Notes under the pieces: model-generated
The model's input: the letters and a program-made list of their open reading frames with translations, nothing else
Told to the model about the DNA's origin: nothing
The model's database searches: none
Part shown: positions 3,071 to 37,559 of the stretch, in pieces
Position numbering within the stretch: position 1 is the stretch's first letter
Layout: the number at the start of each line of letters is the position of its first letter
Source of the DNA: Octopus bimaculoides
Taxonomy: Eukaryota
Assembly: GCF_001194135.2 (NCBI RefSeq)
Contig: NC_069009.1
Coordinates: 9,091,923-9,130,194 of the forward strand
Direction: 5' to 3'
DNA: 38,272 nucleotides
Translations under genes and position numbers: made by a program

Positions 3071-3308
3071 TGCACACAGCCACACCTGCACCTTATGCAA
3101 CCATAATATGCTACAAAGTATATTAAAACACTTTATCTGTAGGGATAATCTTAACAAGTGATGGTTATAGATGTAACATTTTTAATCATAGATCTGTTAG
3201 GCCAAGACTAACCTGGGGCTAAACAACAATTACATCAACAACAACAACAGCAACATTGTATTCACAGTCATTAAAAATTCTTCTCTGCCCTCTCTTATTG
3301 TTTCAGTG

Positions 3309-3582: not shown

Positions 3583-6500
3583 GTTTCTGTAGTGATTTAT
3601 ATGTTTGTAGTGTGTGTGCATTTCTGTGTATATATGTGCATCATCATCATCGTTTAACATCCGCTTTCCATGCTGGCATGGGTTGGACGGTTTGACTGAG
3701 GACTGGCGAGCCAGATGGCTGCACCAGACTCCAATCTGATCTGGCAGAGTTTCTACAGCTGGATGCCTTTCCTAATGCCAACCACTCCGGGAGTGTAGTG
3801 GGTGCTTTTACGTGCCAACGGCATGGGAGCCAGTCAGCCAGCACTGGCATCGACCACACTTGAATGGTGCTTTTTACATGCCACCGGCACAGGAGCCAGT
3901 CCAGCAGCACTGGCAACGACCTCGCTCGAATGTTGTTTTTCACGTGCCACCGGCACAAGTGCCAGTAAGGTGACGCTAGTAATGATCACTCTTGAATGGT
4001 GCTTTTTACGTGCCACCGGCACAGGAGCCAGTCAGCAGTCCTGGCAATGATCACACTCGGATGGTGATCTTAACGTTCCACTAGCACAAATGCCAGTCAG
4101 GCAGTGCTGTCATTGGCTACATCAGCGAATTTGATTTCAATTTCATGTTTGTGTGAAATGTATAGTAGTTAGTATTCTAGCCATACCGACTCATAAGGGC
4201 TGGTTTCCTGGTTTCATGGTGTATATATTCCCTATCTGGATGGGATGCCAATATGTTGCAAGATTACTCATTTTTGCCGGCTGAGTAGACTGGAGCAGCA
4301 TGAAATGAAGTGTTTTGCTCAAGAACACAATGCATCGCCCGGTCCAGGAATTGAAACCTCAACCTTATGATCATGAGCCCAACACTCTAACCACTCAGCC
4401 ACACACCTCCACAGTAGTCAGTATTAGTAACTGTTTTGTTGTTTAACCACAGGTCAGTTTTGTTCCAGCTATAACCATCTTATCTTTAATTCAGGATATG
4501 ATGTATCTAGGACTATACTAGCTAATTACAATGTTGTTGTAGTCAGATGTTGTAGTTGTGTGTATATATGTGCATGTGATGTGAGTTTATGTGTGAGATT
4601 GTGAACATTTGTATGTATGAGTGTATGTTGTATCTGTGTGTATGTATGTAGTAAGAAGGCAAGATTGCAGAATGGTTAGTACACTGAACAAAATGCTTAG
4701 CAGCGTTTCATCTGTCTGTATGTTCTGAGTTCAAATTCTGCCATGGTCAACTTTGCCTTTCATCCTTGTGGGGTCAAGGAAATAAGTACCAGTTGAGCAC
4801 TGGGGTTAGTGTAATTGACTTACTTCCTTCCTTGAAATTGCTGGGCTTGTGCCAAAATTTAAAACCATTATTATTATAGGCGCAGGAGTGGCTGTGTGGT
4901 AAGTAGCTTGCTTATCAACCACATGGTTCTGGGTCCATTCCCACTGTGTGGCACCTTGGGCAAGTGTCTTATACTATAGCCTCGGGCCGACCAAAGCCTT
5001 GTGAGTGGATTTGGTAGACGGAAACTGAAAGAAGCCCGTTGTATATATGTATATATATGTGTATGTATATGTTTGTGTGTCTGTGTTTGTCCCCCCAACA
5101 TCGCTTGACAACCGATGTTGGTGTGTTTACGTCCCCGTAACTTAGTGGTTCGGCAAAAGAGACCGATAGAATAAGTACTAGGCTTCCAAAGAATAAGTCC
5201 TGGTGTCGATTTGCTCAACTAAAGGCCGTGCTCCAGCGTGGCCACAATCAAATGACTGAAACAAGCAAACGAGCAAAGAGCAACCCTTTAGCATTTCCAT
5301 TATCCTGTCAAAATTGATACTTTTTTTATTCACATTGTTTTGAATTAATCAAGAATTATCTTCTGGCTTTGAAATTCTGATATAGTAACTTAATTTTTAG
5401 AATTTTTATTGTAGGGTTGGTGTGAGAGACCAAATCTGGCCACTTTGAGTATAAAACAGTTTGAGTATAAAACAGAATATTTTAGTTGGGTATGGCTTTA
5501 GTTTAAATGCTAAAGGATTAGGGTGGTGAGCTGACAAAATTGTTAGTACACCAGACAAAATACTTAGTACCATTTCATGTCTTTATGTTCTCAGTTCAAA
5601 TTCTGCCAAGGTCTGTTTTGCCTTTTATCCTTATGGGGTTCATAAAATAAGTACTAATTGATCACTGAGGTTGATGTAATCAACTAGCTCTCACCTTTCA
5701 GGCCTTGTACGTCATCATCGTCATTTAACATCTTCTTTTCATACCGGCATGGGTTGGACAGTTTGACAAGAGCTGGATGGGACACCAGTCCATCGCAGGA
5801 TTACTCATTTTTGCCAGCTGAGTGGACAGGAGCAACATGAAATGAAGTGTTTTGCTCAAGAACACAACACATCGCCTGGAATTGAAACCACAATCTTACG
5901 ATCATGAGTCCAACACCCTAACCACCAAGCCATGTGCCTCCACAATCTTTAGTACTAGTGACTAATTGAATGCCCTCAAAATTGATTGATCCCCTCCCCT
6001 CCAAATTCAGCTCAACACAAAACATTGCTAACAAGAGATCTACTCTGTAGTTACTCAACCTGCTAACAATAGCAGCCAAGTCTTCTTCAAATCTCAGCAA
6101 ACTTACTTTTAAAAAGTAAGAGCAATGGATTATGTTGTCCTATGTACACTACATCTAAACAGGATGGGATGGTCGTGGTTGGAACATATTTGATCATAGG
6201 TCTGCTGAATGAGGATGGCCATGGGCTTAAACAGCAACAGCGACTGTAACCATCAATATTAACTATTATACATTAGATAATGTAATCCTAGATACACTAT
6301 GTCTGAATAAAAAGATGGGATGGTTACATCTTTGATTATAGGTCTGCTGGATCAATACTGACCTACAGCTGCTAAACAACAACAACAACTGTGTATACTG
6401 TTTATATTAGTCAAACTGGTGTCCCCGTTTTGATTGTTGCTTTCACTCCATTTTGGCTGTTGTACACTCTGACCTTCCTCAGGTGTCTTGTGTTGAACTC

Positions 6501-9911: not shown

Positions 9912-11050
9912 TTGAACCTAAGAAGCATCAGTTGTGGTGTGCAAGAGAGACATTTGCGCTGGTATGGGCATGTGGCGAGAATGGATAAAGACAGCTGTGT
10001 GAAAAAGTGCCGCATCCTAGCAGTTGTGGGAACCTATGGAAGAGGTAGGCCCAGGAAGACCTGGGATGAGGTGGTGAGGCATGACCTTCGAACATTGGGC
10101 CTCACCGAGGCAATGACTTCTGACCGAGATCCTTGGAAATATGCTGTGCGTGAGAAGACCCGGCAAGCCAAGTGAGACCTAAATCCAAGGCCTCTGCCAG
10201 GGGTGTAGCCAGCCCACTTATGCGTACCTTCCTACGTTGGACACTAAACTCGGCTTGCGAAGACCTGTTGAGGCAAGTGAAATCGAACTAATTTCAACGG
10301 ATAGCACCCATGCCAATGTCGTCTCCTTCATTGGACACAGAAACTCGGCTTGCGANNNNNNNNNNNNNNNNNNNNNNNNNNNNNNNNNNNNNNNNNNNNN
10401 NNNNNNNNNNNNNNNNNNNNNNNNNNNNNNNNNNNNNNNNNNNNNNNNNNNNNNNNNNNNNNNNNNNNNNNNNNNNNNNNNNNNNNNNNNNNNNNNNNNN
10501 NNNNNNNNNNNNNNNNNNNNNNNNNNNNNNNNNNNNNNNNNNNNNNNNNNNNNNNNNNNNNNNNNNNNNNNNNNNNNNNNNNNNNNNNNNNNNNNNNNNN
10601 NNNNNNNNNNNNNNNNNNNNNNNNNNNNNNNNNNNNNNNNNNNNNNNNNNNNNNNNNNNNNNNNNNNNNNNNNNNNNNNNNNNNNNNNNNNNNNNNNNNN
10701 NNNNNNNNNNNNNNNNNNNNNNNNNNNNNNNNNNNNNNNNNNNNNNNNNNNNNNNNNNNNNNNNNNNNNNNNNNNNNNNNNNNNNNNNNNNTGATGATGA
10801 TATATATATATTTTTGTGTGTACGTTTGTGTGTGTCCTTGTGTCTGTTTGTCCTCCCATCAACTGGTGTTGGTGTGTTTACGCCCCTGTAAATTAGCAGT
10901 TTGATAAAAGAGATCAATGGAATAACTTCCAGGCTTAATACAAAAAAAGTGAAAAATAGTACTGGGGTTGAGTCATTCAACTAAAATTCTTCAAGGTGGT
11001 ACCCCAGCATGGCCACAGTCTAATGGTTGAAACAAGTAAAAGATAAAAGA

Positions 11051-12692: not shown

Positions 12693-15457
12693 AATTTACA
12701 CACACACACACACATAGTCAACAAGTGATAGATATATGATTTAAGCCCTGTTAGTGGGCCTGTTTGCTCTTTATGCCAAATATTAGTCTAAAGTATTTCA
12801 ATCTCAAATTCCTGAAATTCTACCTTTCCTTTTACAAATATTTCCAGTCTGCTTGAAGTTGTTAAATCTTGCCAAATCTGATCCGCTAACAACTCTGGTT
12901 CTGGATTTTATTGCTAACCAAGTAAGTGGAAACATATCATTTATTGTTTCTGTTTTGTCTGCGTTGGTGTGGTGGGATTGAAATGGAAAGGCACTACAAT
13001 GAGAGCAAAGGGAAGTAGCAGGAGACCCAGGAAGACATGGGATGAAATATTGAAGGCTGATCTCAAAGAACTTAAGAAGGAGATGGCAGAGGACTGTGAT
13101 ATGTAGCACATTGCTGTACTCAAAAAGACCTGCCCACCACAACAGAATTGAAATCCTAAAACTAAGGTGCTGCATAAAAAGCACTGGAGATGGTGCCATG
13201 TAAAAAGCACCCAGTACACTCTGTGGAGTGGTTGGTGCTGGGAAGAGCATCCATCCATAGAAACCAAGCCAAAACAGACAATGGAACCTGGTGCAGCCCC
13301 TGGCCTTGCCAGTTTTTGTTAAGCTGTCCAACCCATGCCAGCATAGAAAGTGATTGTTAAATGTTATTGATGATTATGGGGATTATGATGTCTTGGCTGT
13401 TAGTGGGTCTACAAGTTGCTGTGATCTTAGAACAGGATATTATAAACCTAATGAAGGAGTTTATGAATATAAGACGCAACGGCTGGATTATATGTTTGCT
13501 GGATCAGGTCTGACCTGGGGTTAAATAACAACTATAACTGCTAATACTTACTGTTGGGTAAGGCTTACTTACTACTACCTAATGTAGCCCTAGATATACT
13601 ATGCCTGAATAAAAGACAGAATGGTCACTGATGTGACATCTTGATTGTAGGTCTGTTGGATAAGAACTAACGTGGTGCTAAACAACAAATATAAGACAAA
13701 TTGCGCCGATACTAACCAATCAGAGTAGTGGACACAACAGGGTCCAAAATGTGGCCAAAGGCTATCTGTTATCTACTACGTTCGTATGTATGTATATATA
13801 ATAGAAAGGAGAGGAATTTTACTCAAGTGTACGCTACACCACTAATACTAACTGCTATACATTAGATAATGTAGTCCTAGATGCATTATGTCTCAAACCA
13901 CGGAATGGTCAAAGCTGTGACATCTTTGATCAAAGGTCAGTTGAATCTGAACTGACCTACACCTAAACAATAATATAGCCGCTAATACTGGCTTCTGTTT
14001 TATACATTAGATGGTGTAGTTTTAGATACATTATGTCTGGGATAGCCACAGCTGGAACATCTTTGCTCAAAGGTCAGTTGAATCAGGACTGACCTGGGCC
14101 TAAACAACAAATATAGCCTTCAGTACTAACACTGTACTATGCCTTAGATCAGGGGTTTTCAAACTTTTTGACTTGCGGACCCCTTTATATTTCAGGCTTT
14201 ACTTTAGGGACCCCCTTATAAACGCTTATGAAATTTATACATAAATATTTGCTTAAAATAACATATTTTTACATTTATTCATTTAACAGTATTTAACAAA
14301 TAAGTTTATTGTCAATTAAAAGATTTCAATTAAAAAACATATATAAAATCAAATTGCCCATAAAAAGTATTTGCTGTCCACGGACCCCCTGTCTTGTCCT
14401 TGCAGACCCCCTGTGGTCCGCGGACCACAGTTTGAAAACCCCTGCCTTAGATAATCTAGTCCTAGATACATTATATCTGAATATAAGATGGGATGGTCAC
14501 AGTTGGAAGCCTTTGATCATGGGTCTGCTGGATCAAAACTTACCTGGAGCTAAGCAATAACAACTATAGGCACTAACATGAACTGCTATACATTTGATAA
14601 TGTACTCCTAGATGCACTGTGTCTGAATAAAAGACAAAACACAGTGTCGTCTGTCTAGTGTCTGTGACTGATGAGATAATTACTCTGAAATGCTAGCATC
14701 TCACAGTCTAGGTCGGTGGTGCTGCGAGCTGATCTAGGGTATACACACCATTTGTCAACAAGCGAGATATATTCTCCATGACAAAACACAGTGAGTAACT
14801 TCTTCCCCAGTTCAAATGTGCATCAAGCTTATTCAGACTTATAATAACATTGCAATTTTACTTATGACTGTTTAGTGCTCCCCCTCTGTAATTTACTTAC
14901 AGTGAGTCACCGTATAGCACTGCCAGTCATTGTATGGTGACTGGAAAAGCATAAGAGAGCCAATCTCTTAATTCAGCTCATAGCGTTGTCTGCCTGGTGT
15001 CTGTGACTGATGAGCAAATAACTACTCTGAAATGCTAGCATCTCACAATCTAGGTCGGTCGTACTGCGAGATATACTCTCCGTGACAAAATGCAGTGAGT
15101 AGCTTGTTCCCCGCTTCAAACATGCATCAGGCATATTCAGACTGATAATAATGTTGCAAAAGATAAGCTGGTTACAGATGCAAGATTTTTAATCATTGAT
15201 TTGCTGCATTAAGTCTGACCTGGGGTTACACAATAATAACAACCATTAAAGCCTCTAATACTAACTACTATACTACTATAGGTGCTATAGTACTACTATA
15301 CTACTATGGCTATGTGGTAAGAAGCTTGCTTCTCAAGCACATGATTCCAGATTCAGTCCCACTGCATGTCACCTTGGGCAAGTGTCTTCTACTATCGCCC
15401 CAGGCTGACCAAAGCCGTGTGAGTAGATTTGGTAGACAGAAACTGAAAGAAGCTCAT

Positions 15458-15491
<34 letters not shown>

Positions 15492-16126
15492 GATGGATGG
15501 ATATGTGTATGCGTGTTTGTGTGTCTGTCCCCCCCACCATTGCTTGACAACTGATGTTGGTACGTGTACATCCCTGTAACTTAGTGGTTCGGCAAAAGAG
15601 ATCAATAGAATAAGTACTAGGCTTACTAAGAATAAGTACTGGGGTTGATTTGTTTGACGAAAGGCAGTGCTCCAGCATGGCCACAGTCAAAAGACTGAAA
15701 CAAATAAAAGAAAAAGAATTCTTCTCCTTCTGCCTATAGTAGAAAGGATTATTGGTGAACTGGTTAAATATCCAGCTAATATTTTTTTTTGTTTGCCAAA
15801 GCTCTTTCATTGCTACTTACAACCTTTTCAATGACTCTTCCTTTTGGTTATGCCGTTTCTTTATTCTGTACTTACTTGTTTTGTATTCCATGTAAATATA
15901 TGCTTTAATCCTATCTGTATCTGTCTACCTTACTATTCATTAAATCGCAACTATGCTGCGGCACTGCCTTGATTGAATCAACCCCACCAATACTTATTTT
16001 CTTTTTTTGTAAAGCCTGATACTTATTCTGTCAGTCTATTTTGCTGAACTGCTAGATTACAGGGATGTAAACACACCAACACCAGTTGTTAAGCAGTGGT
16101 GGAGGACAAACACATACCCAAAGACA

Positions 16127-16162
<36 letters not shown>

Positions 16163-19110
16163 GGTGTTCTTACAGTTTCTATCTACCAAGTCCACTCACA
16201 AAGATTTGATCGGTCCAAGGATATAGTAGAAGACACTTTCCCAAGGTTTCACACAGTGGGACTGAATCCAGAATCATGTGATTGAGATGCAAACTTCTTA
16301 CCACACAGCCATGGATGTATATTATATATACAAGGGTTGGACAAAATAATGGAAACACCTTAAAATTTCAAACAAATTTATTTTGATATGGAGTTGGACC
16401 ACCTTTGGCAGTAATTACAGCTTGAATTCTATGAGGTATGGACTTGTACAAAGTTTGAATTGTTTCCAAAGGAATTTTTGTCCNNNNNNNNNNNNNNNNN
16501 NNNNNNNNNNNNNNNNNNNNNNNNNNNNNNNNNNNNNNNNNNNNNNNNNNNNNNNNNNNNNNNNNNNNNNNNNNNNNNNNNNNNNNNNNNNNNNNNNNNN
16601 NNNNNNNNNNNNNNNNNNNNNNNNNNNNNNNNNNNNNNNNNNNNNNNNNNNNNNNNNNNNNNNNNNNNNNNNNNNNNNNNNNNNNNNNNNNNNNNNNNNN
16701 NNNNNNNNNNNNNNNNNNNNNNNNNNNNNNNNNNNNNNNNNNNNNNNNNNNNNNNNNNNNNNNNNNNNNNNNNNNNNNNNNNNNNNNNNNNNNNNNNNNN
16801 NNNNNNNNNNNNNNNNNNNNNNNNNNNNNNNNNNNNNNNNNNNNNNNNNNNNNNNNNNNNNNNNNNNNNNNNNNNNNNNNNNNNNNNNNNNNNNNNNNNN
16901 NNNNNNNNNNNNNNNNNNNNNNNNNNNNNNNNNNNNNNNNNNNNNNNNNNNNNNNNNNNNNNNNNNNNNNNNNNNNNNNNNNNNNNNNNNNNNNNNNNNN
17001 NNNNNNNNNNNNNNNNNNNNNNNNNNNNNNNNNNNNNNNNNNNNNNNNNNNNNNNNNNNNNNNNNNNNNNNNNNNNNNNNNNNNNNNNNNNNNNNNNNNN
17101 NNNNNNNNNNNNNNNNNNNNNNNNNNNNNNNNNNNNNNNNNNNNNNNNNNNNNNNNNNNNNNNNNNNNNNNNNNNNNNNNNNNNNNNNNNNNNNNNNNNN
17201 NNNNNNNNNNNNNNNNNNNNNNNNNNNNNNNNNNNNNNNNNNNNNNNNNNNNNNNNNNNNNNNNNNNNNNNNNNNNNNNNNNNNNNNNNNNNNNNNNNNN
17301 NNNNNNNNNNNNNNNNNNNNNNNNNNNNNNNNNNNNNNNNNNNNNNNNNNNNNNNNNNNNNNNNNNNNNNNNNNNNNNNNNNNNNNNNNNNNNNNNNNNN
17401 NNNNNNNNNNNNNNNNNTTGAAAGTCCGATAGATCTGTCATTTTAATGAATTTTAATTACCTTTTTCTGATGATATCTGAAAAGAAACAGCAATTTTAGC
17501 AAAACATATCAAGCAACACTAATAATAAATAAAAAGCATAAAAATAAACAAGATTTTGACGGTTTTATAGATATTTCAAATTTATGATGCTAGATGTTAC
17601 CATTATTTTGTCCAACCCCTGTATGTGTGTGGTAAGTAGCTTGCTTACCAACCACATGGTTCCGGGTTCAGTCCCACTGCGTGGCATCTTGGGCAAGTGT
17701 CTTCTATTATAGCCTCGGGCCGACCAAAGCCTTGTGAATGGATTTGGTAGACGGAAACTGAAAGAAGCCCATCATATATATGTATATATATATATATGTG
17801 TGTGTTTGTGTTTGTCCCCCTAGCATTGCTTGACAACCGATGCTAGTGTGTTTATGTCCCCATAACTTAGCGGTTCGGCAAAAGAGACCGATAGAATAAG
17901 TAGTAGGATTACAAAGAATAAGTCCCGGGGTCGATTTGCTCGACTAAAGGAGGTGCTCCAGAATGGCAGCAGTCAAATGACTGAAACAAGTAAGAGAAAG
18001 AGAAAGAATACACACACACACACACACACGAGTTAAGGAATGGTGTACATAAGATCTGGGCTACATATGTTTCATAGTGAGCAGAAACTCAGAAGTGGTA
18101 AACATCCAAGCAAGGTGACACTTCACTTTGATATTTACCACTTTCGAGGTTCCACTCACTATGAAATATATGTAGCCCAGATCTTATCTACTCCATTCCT
18201 TAACTCTTGTATTCTTATTTGCATACCTGGCAACCCTGATTCCCTACTGTGAAATATAAAACAACTTTCTTCAGCTTATCATACTTTCATACCAAAAAAA
18301 TCCACAACCTTCTGCCTCAATAAGCTGCTATTGTTCCTGAAAGTTGTTTTTTTTTAAATATTTATTATGGGTTGCTTAAAGCTAACTTTCTTCCTACACC
18401 TCGATCCTTGGATCATATATATATATGACACTAAACTCTGCTTGCGAAGACCTGTTGGGGCAAGTGAAATCGAAATTGAACCATACTCAATGACTGGTCA
18501 CCGCACCAGTGGAGCACTAACAGCACTGTTGAGCATGTTCATTGCCAGAGCAGCTATCTGGCTTCCGTGCTAGTGGCCCGTAAATAGCACCATTAGAGCG
18601 TAATCGTTACCAGCGTTGCCTTCTAGCACTTGCGCTGGTGGCACGTTATAAAATCATTCGAGCGAGGTCATTGCCAGTGCCGCTGGACTGGCTCCCGTGC
18701 AGGTGGCACGTAAAAAACACCTTTTTGAGTGTGGCCGTTGCCAGTACTGCCTGACTGGCCCTCGTGCCGGNNNNNNNNNNNNNNNNNNNNNNNNNNNNNN
18801 NNNNNNNNNNNNNNNNNNNNNNNNNNNNNNNNNNNNNNNNNNNNNNNNNNNNNNNNNNNNNNNNNNNNNNNNNNNNNNNNNNNNNNNNNNNNNNNNNNNN
18901 NNNNNNNNNNNNNNNNNNNNNNNNNNNNNNNNNNGGCACATAAAAGCACCCACTACACTCTCGGAGTGGTTGGCGTTAGGATGGGCATCCAGCTGTAGAA
19001 ACTCTGCCAGATCAGATTGGAGCCTGGTGCAGCCTTCTGGCTTGCCAGTCCTCAGTCAAATCGTCCAACCCATGCTAGCATGGAAAGCAGACGTTAAATG
19101 ATGATGATGA

Positions 19111-19150
<40 letters not shown>

Positions 19151-22100
19151 TCGTCGTCGTCGTCATGTTGATTTAACATCCGTTTTCCATGCTGGCATGG
19201 GTTGAACAGTTTAGCAGATGCTGACCTGCTGAAGGGCTGTTCAGACTCCATGTTTGTCTTGGCCTGGTTTCTACGACTGGATTCCCTTCCTAATGCCAAC
19301 CACTTTACAGAGTGCACTGGGTACCTCTATGCAGCACCGGTACGGGTGCTTTTTACAAGGCACCACTACTTATGAGCCCACAAGATTAGGGATGCTCAGC
19401 TGGAGAGGATCGTAAGGGATGGGCAACCATGCTTTCGCTTAGCTTGACATGTCCTTTCAAGCACAGCAAACTGACAGGAGTCTTTGTCCCCTGCCATCCC
19501 CTCTGTGAGTCCCAATATTTGTAGATCCTTTCACACCACTTTATCCCACATCTTCCTGGGTCTACCCCTTTTACATGTTCCCTCTACAGTTAGAGCTTAG
19601 CAGCTCTTGATGCAACTCTCCTCATTCATACACATTAGATGGCCATACCAGTACAGTCTTCTCTGTTGCACACTATATCTGATGCTATGTATACCCAGTT
19701 TTTTCTCTCATAGGTACCCAACAAGTTGATTTACTTAACAGGTTTTATTTTGTTTACTTACTTTACTAATTGTAATCTGTTTATATTTAACATCAGATAA
19801 ATTTCATACAACCCAGTCCTACGTAAAAAGAAAGTTTTTGATCTCATAGCAAGTGTATTCTGTTGTCATGGCAGCAGCTGGTGGCCAGCGGTGGAAGCAC
19901 TCGTTACTTCAGTTTCTTTTTCTTTCTTTTTCTCCTCATTACATTGCTTAAATTTCCTTTGTATTTAGAATATTTTTTCCCATTAGTAATGGATAAGAGC
20001 AGAAAAAAAATTCTAAGTGAGAATGATTGCATTAACAAAAAGTGAAAAGCTTCTACTTCAAAGAAGAAATTTAGAATATTTAAAAGTTCTAATAACAATA
20101 GTGGGTCATCAGAGATTGCCTGCTCATTTGGATTGAATGAAACAAGCAGAAGATTATAAGACGAAAAAGGAAAGATGGTGAGCTATGACTAGTGCTGGAG
20201 CTGCTGTTTCTTGTGTCAGAGGTCAAGAGTTGCACATAGAAGATGGCGAAAATTGTTGAAATTTTTGACAAACAAGGCACAGGTGTGGCTGTGTGGTAAG
20301 AAGCTTGCTTCCCAACCACATGGTTCCAGGTTCAGTCTCACTGTGTGGCACCTTAGGCAAGTGTCTTCTACAATAGCCTTAGGCTAACCAAAGCCTTGTG
20401 AGTGGATTTAGTAGATGGAAACTATAAGAAGCCTGTCATTTATTTATATGTGTGTGTCTTTGTGTTTGTGTTGTCNNNNNNNNNNNNNNNNNNNNNNNNN
20501 NNNNNNNNNNNNNNNNNNNNNNNNNNNNNNNNNNNNNNNNNNNNNNNNNNNNNNNNNNNNNNNNNNNNNNNNNNNNNNNNNNNNNNNNNNNNNNNNNNNN
20601 NNNNNNNNNNNNNNNNNNNNNNNNNNNNNNNCATTGCTTAACAACCAGTGTTAATGTGTTTACATACCCATAACTTAGCAGTTCGGCAAAGAAGTTGATA
20701 GAACAAGTACCAGGCTTAAAACTATATATCTACTGGGGTAGATTCATGTGACTAAAAATTCTTCAAGGCAGTGCCCCAGCATGGCCACTGTCTAACGACT
20801 GAAACAAGTAAAAGATAAAAGTTGAACAAACTTCTATTCTTTTCGTACACAAGAGAGTCTGGATGTTATTATTCTTGGTATAACTGTAATAATATTCAAA
20901 AAGTTAACTGTTAGTTCATTATGTTGATGTCAGCTCGGTTCAGCCACTGCCCGCATCTGTTCGCTGTCCATCTGCCATATCATCTCATGCTCTCTCTGCT
21001 ACATCCCAAAGCTTTCTGTCTGGTAGTTGCATTGTGTTGATTTTTTACTGATTGAGAGGCTCAGAAAGGAGCAAGTGGAAAGCTGAAATAGTCACTGGAG
21101 CCTGTTCCATGGAAAATTACGATTGGTCAGATTTTGTTGATCACATGGGTAATATTCTAGCAAATTGTGACATCAGGTGATAGCTGAATATTCCCACTAC
21201 AATGGTTTCATCTTCAACAGCAATTTAATAAACTTGAAATTGAAATGAGATGATAATTGAAATAGAACACTTATTATGACATGGATTAATGACATGCTTT
21301 TACTTGTTTCAGTCATACGGCTGTGGCCATGCTGGGGTACTGCCTTGAAGGGTTTATTTCAGAGGTTCTCAATGTGGGCAGTACTGCCCCCATGAGGGTG
21401 CTAGGCTTGTCAAAGGGGGCATTAAGTTTTAAGGGGTAGTGAAGTAATATAATTAGCATACTAGATTTTACCTATAGTACTACATTATACATAATGAAAC
21501 TAGTAATGATTATTAAAATAAAATGAGATCTCATCAGGCACAGAAAAGTCATTAACTTGCGATGTATAAAGTAAATTCACTGTTAAAAGCTTATACAATC
21601 CATTTTTAGAGTTAATCACACAGCAATTCCTATACCTTTGAAAGCTACAGAAAAATTTAAAATAGAATTTTAAAGGCTTATAGAAGAAAACTATAAGAGG
21701 CAGATTTTCGTTATCTATGATGCTGCTTATTTTGGAAGCATGAACCCACAAAAATTTTCCTTGCTAAAGAAGAACAAACTGTTTCTGACTATAAAGCACC
21801 AAAAAACAGAATCACAAATTTTATTCTTGAAGTTAATATACTTTGCTGGATGTGCAATGTCAGCGTACATCACAACAAAGTGTGAGTGTCTTGAGAAAAA
21901 AGTTGGGCATAAGAGGCCTCACATGTGGTATGCAAGAGAGACAATTGCACTGTTATGGTCATGTGATACATATGGACAAGGACAGCTGTGTAAAGAAGTG
22001 TTGATCTCTAACAATGGAAGGAACCTGTGGAAGTGGTATACTAAGACATGGAACAAGGTGTTGAAGCTTGATCTTCAAACGTTGGGGGTTCATGGAAGCA

Positions 22101-25100
22101 ATGACTAGTGACCAAGACTTTTGGTAATATGTCACGCTTGAGAAGACCCATCAAGCCAAGTGAAATCATAGTCATGGCCAATGCCGGTCACATAACTGGC
22201 CCACAAAAAGCACCCTTCGACTGGTGGGCTTCACAGAGGCAGTGACAAGTGACCAAGACCTTTGGCGATATACTATGCTTGAGAAGACCTGTCAAACCAA
22301 GCAAGATCATAGTCATGGCTGATGCCAGCATTGCATAACTGGCACCTGTGCTAGTGACATGTAAAAAGCACCCACTACACTCTTGGAGTCGTTGACATTA
22401 GGAAGGGCATCCAGCTATAGAGACCATGCCAAATCAGATTGGAACCTGGTGCAGCTCCCCAGCTTATCATTTTTCAGTTACCCCCAACCCATGCCCGCAT
22501 GAAAAGCAGACCCTAAATGATGATGATGATGATGCAAGTTACTTGGCAACCTCACTAATGCTAGTGACATGTATAAAGCATCCAGTATACACTGTCAAGG
22601 GGTTGGTATTAAGAAGAGTATCCAAGCCATAGAAACCTTGCTAAAGCAGATACTGGTGTGTAGCACTGCCCTGCAGCTCTCCAGGTCCTGTCAAACAATC
22701 CAACCCATGCCAGCATGGAAAATAAATGTTAAGTAATGATGGTGATATCAAGGTAAAGCAAATGCTAATCAGCCATACACAAAATTAAAACACACCTAGG
22801 GACTAAAATCAGCAAGTGTTGTCAGATATCTGATGCTGACAGAAAAAAGCCTGAGTGATGAAGTCCCATTTTCAAGATTTATTTCTACCCAAAAATGAAA
22901 AAAATATTGTGTAAAATAACCTCAGTTTTAAAGCTTTGTTGCTCTCCAATAACTCTCTTGGTCATGATCCTGCTATAAATGACTTGGCCTGCAGTTTGGC
23001 ATCTGGTGAGGTAGGTCCGTGCTGTCCAACAGTGTCATGGGGCACTGGATGAACATACTAGTTAAATTCTTGGGGCTTGGCTTGGGCCGGACTTCTAGGT
23101 AGACAAGAACTGGGAAGAGGTGACAAACTGGGTGGCTGACCTCACCTAAAAACAAGTTAAGAGGCAAAAATCCCTGAAAAGCCAAGTGGAAGTAGTGAAT
23201 ACTTAGATTGTATCCATCATCTGTTATCACCTGACCATTGTGCCTTTTCTGGAGAGGGTCACACATTGGTCATAGAAATGTACATGTATCTTTTACCTCT
23301 TATTTGTTCGAGTCTTTAGACTGCAGCCATGCTGGGGCACTACCTAGAAGGATTTTTAGTTGAATGAATCGACCACAGGATTTATTTTTTAAAACCTGAT
23401 ATTTATTTTATCAGTCTCTTTTTCTGAAGTTATAGGGATGTAAACAAACCAACACCAGTTGTCAAGCAGTGTTAGGAAACAAACACACACACACACACAT
23501 ATATATACATACACAATGGGCTTCTTTCAGTTGCCATCTACTAAATCTGCTCATGAGGCTTTAATCAGCTCGAGGCTATAGTAGAAGATACTTGCCCAAG
23601 ATACCATGCAGTGGGACTGGACCCAGAACCATGTGGTTGGGAAGCAAACTCTTTTACCACACAGCCAATCCCTGAGTCTTATGAAGATAATTTTTGCAAC
23701 AGGGTAATTGTTGTGTTCAAAGTTAATTATATAAAGATCATTGTTGATAATGTAATACAAGATGCTATGAATGCTAAATAAGTTCAATGAGAAATTCACA
23801 TTATAAATGCTATTGCAAATATTTGAGATTCATTGCTGTGAGTGACATCAAACAACATGAGAGCCATGAAAGAACTTTTGCTGATTGTTATTCTGTTATT
23901 TTGTTACTTGTTTCAGTCATTAGACTGTGGCCATGCTGGAGCTCCACCTTAAAGGGTTTCAGTTCAAGAAACCAAACCCAGGACTTATTCTTTGTAAGCC
24001 TAGTACTTATTCTATCGGTCCCTTTTTCTGAACTGATAAGTTATGGAGATATAAACACACTGACATTGGTTGTCAGGAGATTGGGGGACAGATACAGTCT
24101 CATACATAAGTACATAGGCATAATTATCCAGCTGTAAAAACATGCCAAAACTGACTTCACTTGTGCTGGTGCCACATAAGAAGCACTCAGTTAACTCTGC
24201 AGAATGGTTGGTGTTAGGAAGGGCATCCAGCCATAAAAACCCTGCCAAAACAGACAGTAGCCTGGTGTAGTTTTCTACCTGGCCGGCTCCTGTCAAATCA
24301 TCCAACCCATACTAGCATGGAAGGCAGACCTTAAAAACAATGTTGATGCTGATGACATGACAGTCTTCTTTCAGTTTCTGTCTACCAAATCTACTCATAA
24401 GGCTTTGATTGGCCCAAGACCATAGTAGAAGACACTTGTCCAAGGTTCCACACAGTGGGACTGAACCCAGAACCATGTGGTTAGGAAGCAAGCTTCTTAA
24501 TACACAGCCACATCTGTGACTATGTGTGAATGATTTTCTACCCTGAAGCCAGAGGCCAGATTTACCTAATGTTTATATGCATCTGCCACTGGTTGCAGAT
24601 TCTTGAGTTTTTGCAAACTGCATCTGCCAACATTATTACATGATTCAGAGCCCCTAGAAAGAGACCCAAAATGCTATACTGTCCCTCCTTAGTTTTCTGT
24701 GTCTTTGTACACTGTGTAAATCTGATCTGTTAATATATAAATATCTATATACTTATTCATGAATGTTCATCATCTGAATCTTTGCAGTCTTTGCTTTCTC
24801 TCTAATTACTTCAAATCATTTGAGAGCTATGAAGTGTCCTCTATATTGAGCATTTATGGATCTCATCTGTTGTGTGTGTGTGTGTATGTATCATCATCAT
24901 CATCATCATCATTTAATATCCACTGTCCATGCTGGCATGGGTTGGATGGTTTGACCAGAGCTGGAAAGCTGCATCAAGCCCCAAGTATCTATTTTATCAT
25001 GCTTTCTATGGCTGGATGCCCTTCCTAATGCCAACCACTTTACAGAGTATGCTGGGTGCTTTTATAAAACACTGCATGAGCACTTTTACATGACACTAGT

Positions 25101-26182
25101 ACAGGACTTTTGCAGGTCAGTTCTCTTCACAAGGGGAGTACAGGTCTTCTTGAGTACAGCAAGGTGCCTGACATATATGGTCCTTTTTTATCTGAAAGGT
25201 TCAGCATCCTGAGCTCATCCTAACCTTTGTCCTCTGTATGTGTGTGTATGCTTATATATATATACATTAAACTACGGTTTACTTTTAAATTACCTGCTAC
25301 CATATACCTTATAACAAGGACCTACATCATCATCATCATCATCATCATCGTTTAACGTCCGCTTTCCATGCTAGCATGGGTTGGACGATTTGACTGAGGA
25401 CTGGTGAAACCAGATGGCTACACCAGGCTCCAATCTGATTTGGCAGAGTTTCTACAGCTGGATGCCCTTCCTAACGCCAACCACTCCGAGAGTGTAGTTT
25501 ATTTATATATATATATATATCATCATCATCATCGTTTAACGTCCGCTTTCCATGCTAGCATGGGTTGGACGATTTGACTGAGGACTGGTGAAACCGGATG
25601 GCAACACCAGGCTCACTGAGGTAATTACCAGGAGTGCATCTGGATACATCTATCCCTTAGAGTGTTTAAACACTTCTAACTTATTCCGTATATATATATA
25701 TATATATATATTGTAAAGTACAGATAAGTTGATGTTTTTTTGAATTCAGAATTGCCATTAGAACAGCAGAAATACTGGGTAAGTTACCCTTACAAAGTGG
25801 AAAAATTTTTCAGCGGGCAGTTTAGCTTAATAGTAAAGCACTCTGCTGAAGTCTTTAGGGATGTGGGTTTGAGTTCCGTAACTGTTTGTTGACAAATTTT
25901 TACCAGTTCTAATGGCAATTCTGTGTTTGAAAAATATCATTTCATCTATATTGTACAATACACATTTTGACACTTATAAAAAAAACTACACATAGTTATA
26001 TATATATATGTCTGTCTATTTCTAATACTGTCAGATTGTGAACAACAATTCTAACATAGAGAAATGCCTACCAATTATTGTGTTGCTGGGACGTCTGTTG
26101 GACACTTTGACAGACTTACACAAAACTTACTATCATTACTACAGTAAGTATGACATTATTATTATTATTATTATTATTAGTG

Positions 26183-26233
<51 letters not shown>

Positions 26234-29015
26234 ATAGCAGTAGCAGCAGTAGTAGCAGCAGCAGCAGTAGTAGTAGTAAGGCGATGAACTGCTTAGCGGT
26301 ATTTCACCTATCACTGTGTTCTGAGTTCAAATTCTGCCAAGGTTGACTTTGCCTTTAATCCTTTCAGGGTCAATAAAATAAATACCAGTTGAACACTGGG
26401 GTTGATGTAATCGACTCATCCCCACCTCCCCCAAGCTGCCTTTGTGGTAAAAATTTGGAAATAATAATTATTATGAACTGTAGTATGGAATTATTAATGT
26501 TGTTGTTGATGTTCTAACACTCTTTTACATTCTGTGTTCAAACTGTGTTCATTTCCACACACATGGGGACACACAGTGGGCTTCCACACAGTTTCTACCA
26601 AATTATTTCACAATTATGGTTTCAATTTTTGGAACAAGGCCAGCAGTTTCAAGTGAGTGGGTAAGTCAATTACATCAACTAGTGTTCAACTGGTTCTTAG
26701 TTTATCAACCCAGAATGGATAAATGGCAAAGCCGACCTTGACGGCATTTGAACTCAGAACATAAAGATGAGTGAAATGCCACTAAGCATTTTACGAGGCG
26801 TGCTAACAATTCTGCCAGTTTGCCACCTTTCGTTATTATTATTATTACTATGTTATTGAGTGAGAGAGCAGTGCATGCCATCAAAGTGACACTGGGGTAA
26901 AATATATGAAGCCCATTATACCCATCATGACTACCCGTCTGATAAGGGTACACCAGGCACATGCATCTCAACCATATGTGTGCGACATGATGATCTCATA
27001 TCAAGATAAACAGCGCATGACCTCACAGATGGGGCCCAGTTAGAATTTTCTTCAGGTTGAGTAGCCCATCCCGCTCAAAAGGTCCCTGAATAAGGTTTGT
27101 TTAAGGATGTTGAGCAAAACACACATGNNNNNNNNNNNNNNNNNNNNNNNNNNNNNNNNNNNNNNNNNNNNNNNNNNNNNNNNNNNNNNNNNNNNNNNNN
27201 NNNNNNNNNNNNNNNNNNNNNNNNNNNNNNNNNNNNNNNNNNNNNNNNNNNNNNNNCGCATGACCTCACAGATGGGGCCCAGTTAGAATTTTCTTCAGGT
27301 TGAGTAGCCCATCCCGCTCAAAAGGTCCCTGAATAAGGTTTGTTTAAGGATGTTGAGCAAAACACACATGTTTCCAAAAGTGAATTATTCAAACCCCAAA
27401 GAATTCCTCTCAACACATGGCTATGATGCTCCCCCACTACTTCTGCTCATGATCATAGATGCACATATCGTCAGCCACCAAGGGACATGCTCAACTGGTT
27501 AAGGTCAAACAACTGACAAGCAAATCTGTGGTATTGAGCAGAATATTTACTGTAGCCCATCTTTTTATACCATGACAAAACAATGTACATGATTACACTC
27601 CAATCAATTAAGATCAGAAGCCATGAGAGTCACTGCCTGGTACTGCATCCAGGCATTGATATTATATTATTATTATTATTATGATAATGATAATGATGAT
27701 GAATGATAGTAATAATAAAATTTTGAGCTCAAATTCCGCTGAAGTTGAATTTATCTTTCAGTCATCAGCACTCTATAAAATCAGGTACCAGTAATATATT
27801 GGACGTCATTGAATCAATATACTCACTGCCAAAACATTAATCCTTATGCCAATGTAAGAAATTATTATAATTTTTGTTTGTTAATTAATCCATGTGCCTA
27901 CCTGTCTGTCTATTCATCTATCTATATATTGTGCCCCTTTCAACTCTCTTTTTTCCCCCTCTGCCTCTCTTTCTCTCTCTCTCTCTCTTTCTCTCACTTT
28001 GTCTATTTGCTACTCTCTCTTTCATCTCTCTTACTCTCTCACCTATATATATAAACAAACAGAAAGGAACTCTTGAATGCAGGATAGCTGTGAAGTCAAT
28101 GTAAAAAATCGAGTAAAAGTGATCAGCAAGCCTCAAGCCTCTACACAGAATTGAACCCTGTACCGCTCAAATTCCAGCTGAGTACACTATACCATTAAGC
28201 CTAGAGACCCCTTTTTTTTACCATTTTTGTCCCTTTTTTCTCACTTTATCCTGCCTTCTAAAGAGTATTTACTTAATTTCCTAAGTTGTCTTCACAGCCA
28301 TCCTGCATTCAAGAATTCCTTTATGTTCTGTAGAATATCAACTCACTCAGCACTTATAAGTTTGTTTAGAAAATGTCCTCATACATATATCTTTTATCTT
28401 TTACTTATTTTGGTCATTAGACTGTGGCCAGGCTGGGGCACTACTTTGAAGGCTTTTAGTCAGACGATTAATCCCAAGACTTATTTTTCAAAGCCTAGTA
28501 CTTATTTTTACTCTTGTTTCAGTCATTTGACTGTGGCCATGCTGGAGCACCGCCNNNNNNNNNNAATCGTCCAACCCATGCTAGCATGGAAAGCGGACGT
28601 TACACGATGATGATCACAAATTCCAAATAAAATCTCTTTGATGAGACCAGGAATGGAGAGATTCTACGATGTGGTAGTCTGCCTCCTATGATGGAATCTT
28701 CATTGAGAAATTTACAGTGGCTGGGACACATACACAGGATGGATGACAACACACTCTCCAGACAAATACTTTACTCCCAACTATACAAGGGGGAAAAAAC
28801 AACCATGGAAGACATAGACTGAGATTCAAAGATGTTGCATAAAGGAAAATAAAATGGAAAAGGAATTCTTTTATTCTTATATTTGTTTCAGTCATTTGAC
28901 TGTGGCCATGCTAGAGCACCGCAAAGTTATGGGGACATAAACACACCAGCATCGGTTGTCAAGCGATGAGGGTGGACAAACAGAGACGCACAAACATATA
29001 CACACACACTCACAT

Positions 29016-29054
<39 letters not shown>

Positions 29055-31322: not shown

Positions 31323-31373
31323 GTAATGTACTCAAATTGGTATCTTATTCCATATCTTTGTCTACTCTTTTAA

Positions 31374-31593
31374 CCCTTTTGTTACCGTATTTATTTTGAG
31401 ATGTTCTGTTTCTTTCAATTAATTTTAAATATAACAAAGAATTTAGTAAAATAACTTAGTTATCATTAGGCTAATGTTAGGAACATAAATTGTGACTAAG
31501 GTTTGGTGGAAGATTTTAATTCAAAACTTATGAAAGCAAGACATTTGTACTACAGAGCCAGAGGTGGTTTCAGCCAGATTGGTATCAAAAGGG
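31374..31593. mobile_element. piggyBac-type MITE (220 bp)
   Basis: TTAA (31370-73) CCCTTTTGTTACC ... GGTATCAAAAGGG TTAA (31594-97); TIRs 12/13. A partial relative ends at about 30585. Confidence 0.9.
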
Positions 31594-31598
31594 TTAAA

Positions 31599-31935
31599 AT
31601 GAATTTAGATCAGATCCAAATCAGACACTGCATGTTGTATGAATCCAAAAGCTCTTCTAGAATGGAAGCAGCAAGAAATATTCATTCTGTCTATGGAAAT
31701 GAAGCTTTAAGTGTCCAGATATGCCAGTGATGGTTTGACTTCCACTTGGGAAATTTTTCTTTCATAGATTCCCCTCAATCTAGACAACCAAATTCTGTCA
31801 ATAATGAACTTCTGAAAATTATATTTAACTGCATTAGAATTAACAAAACAGTTCATTTCAAGTCACACTTTTCCCATAAAATACCTTCAGGAACAAGGAA
31901 AAGGGTCCAAACTTGGTCAGTGGTCTCTCATCTCT
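31599..31935 (+). pseudogene. mariner transposase N-terminal relic
   Basis: MNLDQIQIRHCMLYE...EAARNIHSVYGNEALSVQICQ*WF...DSPQSRQP ~ mariner HTH; ends near a decayed WVPHEL motif. Confidence 0.7.
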
Positions 31936-32102: not shown

Positions 32103-32625
32103 TTAGGTTGGCAACTAAGTTCCCACCGTTTTTTTTTTTTTTTAATTTAAATTTTTTAAAAGGTTTAATAAAAAATAACTAATTAATCAATAATGTATTC
32201 ACCCTTGTTGTTTACAACTTCTTCCCAACGTTCAACAAGATTTTCAATACCTCGTTGGTAGAAATCACCCAATTTCGACTCGAAAAATTGATCAACCATG
32301 CTCTCAATTCTGCATCAGTATTGAACGAAACTCTGTGCATAGCATTTGAAAGAGATCGAAAGAGGTGGAAATCTGTTGGTGCCAAATCAGGAGAGTACAG
32401 TGAGTGTGGCAGTACTTCCCAGTCATGCATTTGTATGGCTTCCTTGGTCATATAGGCAATATGAGGGCGGGCGTTGTTGTGCAGCAGAACTATTTTTTCT
32501 TGTATAGCCGTGTTGAGTCGTTCCATCTGTTGAACATAGAGTTCCGTGTTGACCGTTTGATTCCATTCAAGCCATTCATAATGGATAATCCCTTCCCAGT
32601 CCCACCATACGCACAACATTGATTT
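32103..32625 (-). mobile_element. mariner (DD34D) 3' half with terminal TIR
   Basis: MLCVWWDWEGIIHYE...LLHNNARPH...HSLYSPDLAPTDFHLFRSL; TA|TTAGGTTGGCAACTAAGTT terminus at 32101-32121. Confidence 0.9.
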
Positions 32626-33679: not shown

Positions 33680-34279
33680 CATCATCATCATCATCATCGT
33701 TTAACGTCCGCTTTCCATGCTAGCATGGGTTGGACGATTTGACTGAGGACTGGTGAAACCGGATGGCAACACCAGGCTCCAGTCTGATTTGGCAGAGTTT
33801 CTNNNNNNNNNNNNNNNNNNNNNNNNNNNNNNNNNNNNNNNNNNNNNNNNNNNNNNNNNNNNNNNNNNNNNNNNNNNNNNNNNNNNNNNNNNNNNNNNNN
33901 NNNNNNNNNNNNNNNNNNNNNNNNNNNNNNNNNNNNNNNNNNNNNNNNNNNNNNNNNNNNNNNNNNNNNNNNNNNNNNNNNNNNNNNNNNNNNNNNNNNN
34001 NNNNNNNNNNNNNNNNNNNNNNNNNNNNNNNNNNNNNNNNNNNNNNNNNNNNNNNNNNNNNNNNNNNNNNNNNNNNNNNNNNNNNNNNNNNNNNNNNNNN
34101 NNNNNNNNNNNNNNNNNNNCTTGCACGCCACAACTGATGCTTCTAATGTTCAGCTTTTCTTTCAAGATACTTACACTCTGACGGGTATTCACATTGACAT
34201 TACACATCCAACGGAGCATACTGGCTTCATTCCTTGCGAGCTTACGTATGTCCTCAGCAGTTACAGCCCATTTGCCATG
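33680..34279 (-). mobile_element. RTE LINE 3' fragment spanning a gap
   Basis: WAVTAEDIRKLARNEASMLRWMCNV...LNIRSISCGVQ right of the gap; (GAT)n-tailed 3' UTR left of it. Confidence 0.85.
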
Positions 34280-34916
34280 TCCCCAGAACATGTACCAAGA
34301 GTGATAAAAATCAAACATCCAGTCACCATCATGGTGTCTAGAGTGATCACCAGTGATGGCAACATTATGCCTCCATTCATCTTCCCACACGGTCTCAGAC
34401 TCAACATGGAGGCCTACATCAAGTGCCTGCAGGAAGTAGAGTTGCCCTGGGTCAAGAGAGTGGCTGCTGGAAGACCCTATGTCTGGCAACATGCACCATG
34501 CCACCCAACTTTACACCATGCCACACAAGCAGGAGAATCCAGTCATGGCTTTCAGACAATTTCTGCGACCACATCATCCCTAACATCTGGCGACCTAACT
34601 CTCCAGACTGCAACCCGCTTGATTATGTGTGGGGCACAGTTGAGTGAAAAACCAACAAAACTCCTCGTAACACCAAAGATGAACTGATTGGAAGGATTCA
34701 CCAACTTAAACAAGGAGACCATCCAGAAGAGTTGCAGGAGATTCCAAAGTCATCTGGAGGCCATGGTGAAGCCAATGGCGATTTTATTGAATGAATTTAC
34801 TCTTTAGTATTTCAATATATTTTATGTAATTTTGGTAAATATACCTGTTAAAATGAGATATCAGTGTTATTTTCATTTTTGTGTAATTTAGACAACAATA
34901 TATTCACCGCACCCTG
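34280..34916 (+). mobile_element. Tc1/mariner DD37D (maT) transposon 3' half
   Basis: HPVTIMV..VITSDGNIMPPFIFPHGLRLN...PCHTSRRIQSWLSDNF...WRPNSPDCNPLDY; terminus CACCCTG|TA at 34916. Confidence 0.85.
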
Positions 34917-37452: not shown

Positions 37453-37559
37453 GTATGTATATTTATACATGTGTATGTATGTATATACATATGTACAGGC
37501 ATGTTGTATATATATATGTATATGTGTGTATACATTTATTTATTTATGCATTTTAGCCA

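Follow-up and report, generated by a model that had tools for sequence, protein, structure and literature searches.

Does a short, partly duplicated repeat in the genome of Octopus bimaculoides represent a retrozyme, the kind of non-autonomous retroelement in which two hammerhead ribozymes cut the RNA, which is then circularized, and could this copy still cleave itself? The question is raised by a 38,272-nt stretch of contig NC_069009.1 (positions 9,091,923 to 9,130,194, forward strand; this whole stretch is referred to as the window, and all positions below are counted within it), for which an original prediction had proposed a retrozyme-like element built from a 342-nt tandem unit and two type I hammerheads. 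The segment at 14633-15159 is probably an old, decayed 1.5-unit insertion, in an octopod genome, of a retroelement that is non-autonomous, bears hammerheads and belongs to the metazoan retrozyme type without long terminal repeats (LTRs). This reading is preferred because the conserved core, helix I and a palindromic helix III are ordered exactly as in a type I hammerhead in both motifs, and because the motif is far from chance expectation, the units are arranged head to tail, the insertion is discrete, and the length and guanine-plus-cytosine (GC) content of the unit are retrozyme-like. The retrozyme-like element was recovered in part: the type I layout, the palindromic helix III and a head-to-tail, low-GC, noncoding unit of ~340 nt were all found, whereas helix II and the Rfam score fell short of those of a complete hammerhead.

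Two hammerhead-like motifs in a head-to-tail repeat

Two hammerhead-like motifs were delineated on the plus strand from sequence and pairing, at 14654-14712 (motif 1) and 14993-15054 (motif 2). Motif 1 reads UCUAG-ugu-CUGUGA-CUGAUGA-GAUAAUUACUCU-GAAA-UGCUAGCA-UC-UCACAG-u-CUAGG and motif 2 reads CCUGG-ugu-CUGUGA-CUGAUGA-GCAAAUAACUACUCU-GAAA-UGCUAGCA-UC-UCACAA-u-CUAGG, in agreement with the earlier description of two direct copies carrying the full hammerhead core. In motif 1, the distal part of helix I pairs 14654-14658 with 14708-14712 and the proximal part pairs 14662-14667 with 14701-14706; between them lie the CUGAUGA core segment (14668-14674), the helix II region (14675-14686), GAAA (14687-14690), the helix III palindrome (14690-14699) and C17 (14700). 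The equivalent parts of motif 2 are 14993-14997 with 15050-15054 (distal helix I), 15002-15006 with 15043-15047 (proximal helix I), 15007-15013 (core segment), 15014-15028 (helix II region), 15029-15032 (GAAA), 15032-15041 (helix III) and 15042 (C17). In both motifs, the order of CUGAUGA, GAAA and AUC is that of a type I hammerhead, and every position of the conserved core, taken as C3-U4-G5-A6-N7-G8-A9, G12-A13-A14, A15.1-U16.1 and H17, is present. The predicted cleavage sites at C17 (14700 and 15042) are separated by 342 nt, exactly as had been proposed.

The proximal helix I has 6 bp in motif 1 and, in motif 2, 5 bp plus a C.A mismatch (15001/15048) that lies at the outer end of this helix and is caused by a G to A change at 15048. 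In both motifs, an asymmetric internal loop (UGU/U) separates the proximal helix from a 5-bp closing stem, the distal part that had been claimed to pair in each copy despite sequence differences; it does so, with two one-sided changes between the copies (U.G to C-G and A-U to G.U) preserving the pairing. Helix III also bears out its earlier description as a palindrome, being the same 10 nt in both motifs (AUGCUAGCAU, AUG-CUAG-CAU); as a hairpin it forms 3 bp closed by a CUAG loop at 0 kcal/mol, and as a duplex between two copies it forms 10 bp at -15 kcal/mol.

The pattern CTGATGA-N(5-30)-GAAATGCTAGCATC has exactly two matches in the window (14668-14700 and 15007-15042, both on the plus strand) and none in 100 shuffled windows. 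A purpose-made descriptor, in which helix II was ignored and the core was combined with a non-G H17, a helix III based on A15.1-U16.1 (3 bp or more) and a helix I with no fewer than 5 bp, had an expectation of 0.017 matches per shuffled window (300 dinucleotide shuffles); once helix I was required to have 6 bp or more, it matched in 0 of the 300. On the real window the descriptor finds both motifs, and a further site, at 1292, appears when helix III is relaxed to 2 bp. The hammerhead-like observation is confirmed as real and beyond chance, although the two motifs derive from a single ancestor and are not independent events.

Another hammerhead-like match, at 15795-15831 on the opposite strand and 640 nt downstream, was the single match of a less stringent descriptor for minimal hammerheads (core variant UUGAAAA, with U3/A8). 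It has a 4-bp helix I, a 5-bp helix II that includes G.U pairs, and a nonpalindromic helix III; given an expectation of 0.06 per window, and at least one match in 11 of 200 shuffles, it is probably a chance match.

The motifs lie in an array of 1.5 head-to-tail units on the plus strand, comprising unit 1 (14640-14978, 339 nt) and a partial unit 2 (14979-15159, 181 nt) that matches 14640-14855 of unit 1. Alignment places a 38-nt segment (14724-14761), with GCGAG direct repeats at its ends, in unit 1 only. Thus, of the tandem 342-nt unit proposed earlier, the spacing and the head-to-tail arrangement hold, but the array contains 1.5 units rather than 2 and unit 2 lacks the 38 nt; Tandem Repeats Finder did not call the array. 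The two units differ by 24 substitutions over 178 aligned positions (13.5%), consisting of 19 transitions and 5 transversions, and by indels of 38 nt and 3 nt. Three adjacent CA/TG pairs between the units, of the CpG-loss type, fall on both copies, and this pattern of CpG decay indicates, as judged from sequence, a neutral ageing of the locus.

The predicted monomer between the cleavage sites (14701-15042, plus strand) is 342 nt long with 41.8% GC and contains only short open reading frames (ORFs) of a noncoding kind, none longer than 53 aa and none with relatives in translated-ORF searches. It has no LTR, no primer-binding site (PBS), no polypurine tract (PPT) and no coding capacity, and its ends pair with each other as a long, imperfect extension of helix I. 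For the 53-aa minus-strand ORF that spans the second hammerhead, a word-index protein search gave no match, and the one bacterial repeat protein returned by HMMER was dismissed as a chance match.

Anatomy of the insertion and a proposed route of copying

The boundaries of the inserted block of ~1.5 units (14633-15159, plus strand) were set by unit homology and by realignment of the surrounding host repeat. A probable target-site duplication, the hexamer AAAAGA, stands on both sides of the block, at 14627-14632 and 15158-15163. The first two A residues of the right copy possibly belong to the element itself, and this AA overlap leaves the 3' end ambiguous by 2 nt and the duplication at 4-6 bp. 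The host repeat consensus at the insertion point is CTGAATATAAGATGG, and at the position equivalent to the right duplication unit 1 reads TTGCAATTTT. Excision of 14633-15163 leaves a stub on the left (14609-14632) that, taken together with the sequence from 15164 onward, aligns along the whole of a neighboring host unit; the emptied site, in other words, restores the host repeat. This realignment, together with the target-site duplication, supports a mobile element that was copied over more than one unit length.

The host repeat is a tandem repeat of ~146 nt that occupies 13877-14632 and 15160-15300, with units starting near 13877, 14023, 14463 and 14609 and weaker copies at 13616-13693, 6266-6382 and 3169-3232. 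It also contains an element resembling a miniature inverted-repeat transposable element (MITE) at 14150-14444 (295 bp), with terminal inverted repeats CAGGGGTTTTCAAACT / AGTTTGAAAACCCCTG and an 8-bp flanking duplication, CCTTAGAT, at 14142-14149 and 14445-14452. Since both the retrozyme-like block and the MITE-like element lie inside the host repeat, the latter predates both insertions.

The block starts 68 nt before the first cleavage site and ends 117 nt past the second. Because its ends lie off the cleavage sites, the template was not a processed linear monomer, and we infer instead a circle or a multimer longer than one unit, which fits a proposal already made for such elements (PMC7761336). 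In the proposed mechanism, the type I hammerheads would cleave a tandem or read-through transcript at the position that follows the C of AUC, with the two ribozymes probably acting as a dimer through AUGCUAGCAU, because helix III is short and palindromic. With its 5'-OH and 2',3'-cyclic phosphate termini, the product of ~340 nt could be circularized by an RtcB-type ligase, the predicted circle joining 15042 to 14701 at a junction that would read ...GCUAGCAUC followed by UCACAGUC. A reverse transcriptase acting in trans, in all likelihood that of a Penelope-like element, would then go more than once around the circle, starting at a nick in an A-rich target, and the outcome would be a block longer than one unit, with ends off the cleavage sites and a short target duplication. 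The anatomy of the locus agrees with such an outcome, as it does with a circle or a multimer as the proposed template. To judge from its sequence, this particular copy has most likely lost efficient self-cleavage and become a fossil in the genome, because the units have diverged by 13.5% and acquired indels, helix II is reduced to 1-2 bp with an extra U, and motif 2 has lost the outermost pair of its proximal helix I. The original proposal of a family that can give rise to a circular RNA of ~340 nt is an extrapolation from one decayed locus.

Helix II and competing explanations

Several observations weigh against assigning the block to a decayed retrozyme. Between A9 and G12 lie GAUAAUUACUCU in motif 1 (12 nt) and GCAAAUAACUACUCU in motif 2 (15 nt), which give a helix II of at best 2 bp (G-C and A-U) and of 1 bp (G-C), respectively, so that neither motif has the canonical helix of ~4 bp built from G10.1-C11.1; in addition, an A to C difference between the copies at position 10.2 breaks a helix II pair, with no covariation. 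On stretches of 76-78 nt, the best match to any Rfam model of the hammerhead clan was to Hammerhead_3, misregistered and on motif 1 only, at 12.9 bits versus a threshold of 48.5, and the clan models returned nothing on the motif 2 stretch. Differences between the units affect 3 of 48 positions in the hammerhead versus 20 of 119 elsewhere, which is not significant (Fisher p = 0.086), and as a test of selective conservation this comparison is confounded by CpG decay outside the motif. Folded as a circle, the monomer has a minimum free energy of -86.9 kcal/mol with 63% of its bases paired, compared with -77.8 +/- 5.7 kcal/mol for shuffled sequences; it thus folds slightly better than they do, although a z of -1.6 is suggestive only. 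Because its surroundings are rich in A, the AAAAGA duplication may owe something to coincidence. No further copy of the unit was found within the 38-kb window, which also contains no Penelope-like ORF, and no second copy was found in IMG/VR, the JGI metagenomes or the GTDB genomes, collections that hold no cephalopod genome. These three collections were scanned by pattern, and the matches to CTGATGA-N(5-30)-GAAATGCTAGCATC (none in IMG/VR, four in the JGI metagenomes and four in GTDB) were rejected as relatives and attributed to chance, all of them being without helix I and those from GTDB being bacterial.

A weak helix II had been noted as a caveat from the start, and it proved to be nearly absent from both motifs, with an extra U adjoining G12 in each. 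Rfam gave no hammerhead match on the whole window at the gathering score and none at E<=10 on 1.2 kb around the locus; the earlier proposal to check the locus against the Rfam hammerhead models thus turned out negative, with no clan model near its threshold, and a full canonical hammerhead is contradicted both by helix II and by that threshold. The hammerhead folds have energies of -6.0 and -4.8 kcal/mol, versus minimum free energies of -14.3 and -13.9 kcal/mol for other folds of the two motifs, and the helix II pairs bring no energy gain. Thermodynamic folding was given little weight, since a control with a canonical helix II also lacked helix III in its minimum-free-energy fold. In motif 2, CAAAUA directly follows G10.1 and the 3' strand ACUACUC is left without a partner. 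In the type I hammerheads of Schistosoma and newts, CAAAUA forms loop 2, and its position, together with the unpartnered ACUACUC, suggests that the 5' strand of helix II was lost, which serves as a lead rather than as a test. An intermolecular, maxizyme-like helix II between the two motifs was considered and rejected because their 3' strands are the same, so that no pairs are added.

Among the competing explanations, it is unlikely that the hammerhead resemblance is fortuitous and that the block is some other repeat, SINE-like (short interspersed nuclear element) or satellite, that was partly duplicated in place. The most constraining helix is indeed absent, the Rfam models are blind to the motif, the window is full of other repeats, and 0.017 matches per 38 kb would extrapolate to the order of a thousand chance matches in a genome of gigabases when helix II is ignored. 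However, that estimate omits the closing stem, the 10-nt palindrome, the length and GC content of the unit, the tandem layout and the insertion anatomy, which are jointly very unlikely to arise by chance; the CAAAUA of motif 2 likewise argues against a fortuitous origin. It is quite improbable, too, that the block is a functional retrozyme copy whose atypical hammerhead, with a minimal helix II of 2 bp and a bulged U, cleaves probably only as a dimer, by way of the palindromic helix III, and yields a circularized 342-nt RNA. Such activity is made conceivable by the intact core, helix I and helix III of both motifs amid 13.5% divergence elsewhere, by the weak trend toward fewer differences in the hammerhead, and by the likeness of the block to a copy of a circle or multimer, in that a circular template, if there was one, implies that its ribozyme had cleaved. 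Engineered "minizymes" without helix II also keep reduced activity. Against it stand the lack of any stability gained from helix II and the unfavorable energies of the hammerhead folds, the single G-C pair retained in motif 2, the absence of Rfam support and the CpG decay, which points to neutral ageing; moreover, an inserted nucleotide beside G12, the general base, is not known to be tolerated. A precedent on the favorable side is the axolotl hammerhead HHR_Amex2, which has a U.U mismatch and a weakened helix II base and still cleaves, better as a dimer (PMC7229834).

Rather than a decayed retrozyme, the block might be the remnant of an autonomous Penelope-like element, consisting of a pseudo-LTR with its hammerhead left after truncation or recombination, although there is only a slim likelihood of this. 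Within their pseudo-LTRs, Penelope-like elements do bear type I hammerheads whose helix III is small and palindromic, and such elements integrate as partial tandems (PMC4209133; PMC8557442), vertebrate retrozymes are reported to be related to these pseudo-LTRs (2026 preprint, 10.64898/2026.07.22.740005), and Penelope elements have been annotated in cephalopods (PMC6962438). In contrast, the units of the octopus locus abut head to tail, neither an ORF nor the remnant of one intervening, no GIY-YIG or Penelope-type reverse transcriptase motif occurs in the window, and the hammerheads of Penelope-like elements typically have a helix II of 6-8 bp and a shorter helix I, the opposite of what is seen here. 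The only YxDD motif in a recognizable reverse transcriptase context in the window is that of a long interspersed nuclear element (LINE) at ~37.4 kb. A further notion, that an octopus family to which this locus would belong carries a natural hammerhead lacking a real helix II (2 bp and a bulged U beside G12) and cleaves as a dimer via the 10-bp intermolecular helix III, is highly unlikely; if true, it would provide a natural counterpart of the engineered minizymes and a class of hammerheads missed by current descriptors and Rfam models.

Finally, Rfam matched mir-11 to 14647-14719 (plus strand) at 16.9 bits, over motif 1 and not over motif 2, and the match was traced to helix I (CUGUGAC...UCACAGUCU). 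That match would favor reading the hairpins as microRNA precursors of the mir-2/mir-11 type, with UCACAGUCU in the 3' arm. This candidate was rejected as exceedingly improbable: 16.9 bits fall well short of the gathering score (45), nothing was matched on motif 2, the stability of the hairpins is ordinary (z of -1.6 and -1.2), and helix I by itself accounts for the match.

Relation to known elements and the surrounding window

Metazoan non-LTR retrozymes are described as noncoding tandem repeats of 150-450 bp with type I hammerheads and low GC content (<45-50%), without LTR, PBS or PPT, with target duplications of >4 bp and monomers of 170-400 nt; examples are the 350-390-nt repeats of Mytilus galloprovincialis and the axolotl Rtz_331 and Rtz_353 (Cervera and de la Pena 2020, PMC7229834). 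The octopus locus corresponds to this definition apart from a complete hammerhead, sharing the type I layout, a head-to-tail arrangement in which one unit is partial, the low GC content, the lack of coding sequence, the duplication and the end-paired monomer, as well as, with amphibian retrozymes, the short palindromic helix III that is said there to favor dimeric cleavage. Unlike those elements, it comprises 1.5 units at a single known locus and a weakly folded monomer, its helix II has 1-2 bp instead of ~4 bp, an extra U precedes G12, and a loop 1/loop 2 tertiary motif is not assignable. Axolotl retrozymes also show a weak helix II and cleavage that depends on dimers (PMC7229834), but not to the degree seen here. 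A retrozyme pipeline that combines Tandem Repeats Finder with complete motifs would not call this locus.

Canonical metazoan type I hammerheads, with whose layout the intact parts of the octopus motifs agree, have a helix I of 6 bp, a helix II of 4 bp and a helix III of 1-2 bp with a small palindromic loop (PMC4209133). With newt satellite 2 and Schistosoma Sm-alpha (RF00163, Hammerhead_1), the octopus motifs share the core, the 6-bp proximal helix I, the internal loop, the closing stem and a helix III of 1-3 bp with a palindromic loop, and the unit length is close to the 330-340 nt of newts; they differ in lacking the 5' strand of helix II and a reportable RF00163 score. The minimal hammerheads of Penelope-like pseudo-LTRs combine a helix II of 6-8 bp with a helix I of 2-5 bp and flank an ORF for a reverse transcriptase with GIY-YIG (Cervera and de la Pena 2014, PMC4209133). 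They resemble the octopus motifs in being type I, in having a small palindromic helix III that implies dimers and in their association with retrotransposition, whereas the octopus locus has a long helix I, a nearly absent helix II and no ORF. Plant LTR retrozymes carry type III hammerheads in LTRs of ~350 bp, with PBS and PPT, 4-bp duplications, circles of 600-1000 nt and high GC content (Cervera et al. 2016, PMC4918200); only the concept is shared, namely, that two hammerheads cleave the RNA of a non-autonomous retroelement, which is then made circular.

In the giant squid genome, 235 Hammerhead_1 matches above the Rfam threshold have been reported, along with Penelope elements (PMC6962438), and therefore hammerheads in cephalopods are not new. 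Those bona fide cephalopod hammerheads pass the Rfam threshold, whereas this locus fails it. No paper describing a cephalopod retrozyme was found in a literature search. If the family were confirmed, the range of non-LTR retrozymes would come to include cephalopods, whose RNA biology is known to be unusual and in which, within the literature searched, hammerhead matches have been counted by automatic annotation only and not studied; it would also provide a concrete element for seeking ribozyme-made circular RNAs; a decayed single copy by itself changes no current view.

The remainder of the window is rich in repeats, some of them interrupted by scaffold gaps, which account for 2205 N (e.g., within 10350-10800, 16400-17400, 18700-18900, 20470-20640 and 33760-34120). 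Candidate exon ORFs at 30085-30384 and 31106-31399, relevant to the earlier proposal of MEI1 as the host gene, gave no protein or Pfam match. Broken LINE reverse transcriptase ORFs occupy 36372-37470 on the minus strand, with YADD near 37398, and one of the LINE ORFs (36605-37030, minus strand) is 80-81% identical to uncharacterized O. bimaculoides proteins, which supports an octopod origin; nothing similar to the retrozyme-like unit was found on the contigs reached through relatives of the LINE ORF (L005-L007). Similar C-terminal LINE pieces are located at 9912-10175 (plus), 21740-22108 (plus) and 33701-34504 (minus).

By far the commonest repeat of the window, and the source of many spurious ORFs, is a SINE-like repeat of ~350 nt, present at 15300-15660 and in at least 15 other places on both strands (e.g., 4889-5213, 17628-17944, 1937-2231, 15976-16312 and 28918-29203), the copies being 66-83% identical. 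A tRNA-like sequence at 25816-25887 (plus strand), scored by Rfam at 33.1 bits versus 29, not called by ARAGORN and single-copy in the window, could represent either a tRNA pseudogene or a tRNA-derived SINE's head. A mariner/Mos1-type transposase is present in fragments, namely, HTH_48 at 31503-31727 (plus strand, E 1.2e-08) and a partial DDE domain, Transposase_1, at 32215-32619 (minus strand, E 7.9e-14), which lie on opposite strands and therefore probably represent two broken copies. A 66-nt tandem repeat at 3801-4100 (4.6 copies), which recurs at 18536-18770 (minus strand) and 35945-36277 (plus strand) with ~80% identity, is probably the internal array of another transposable element.

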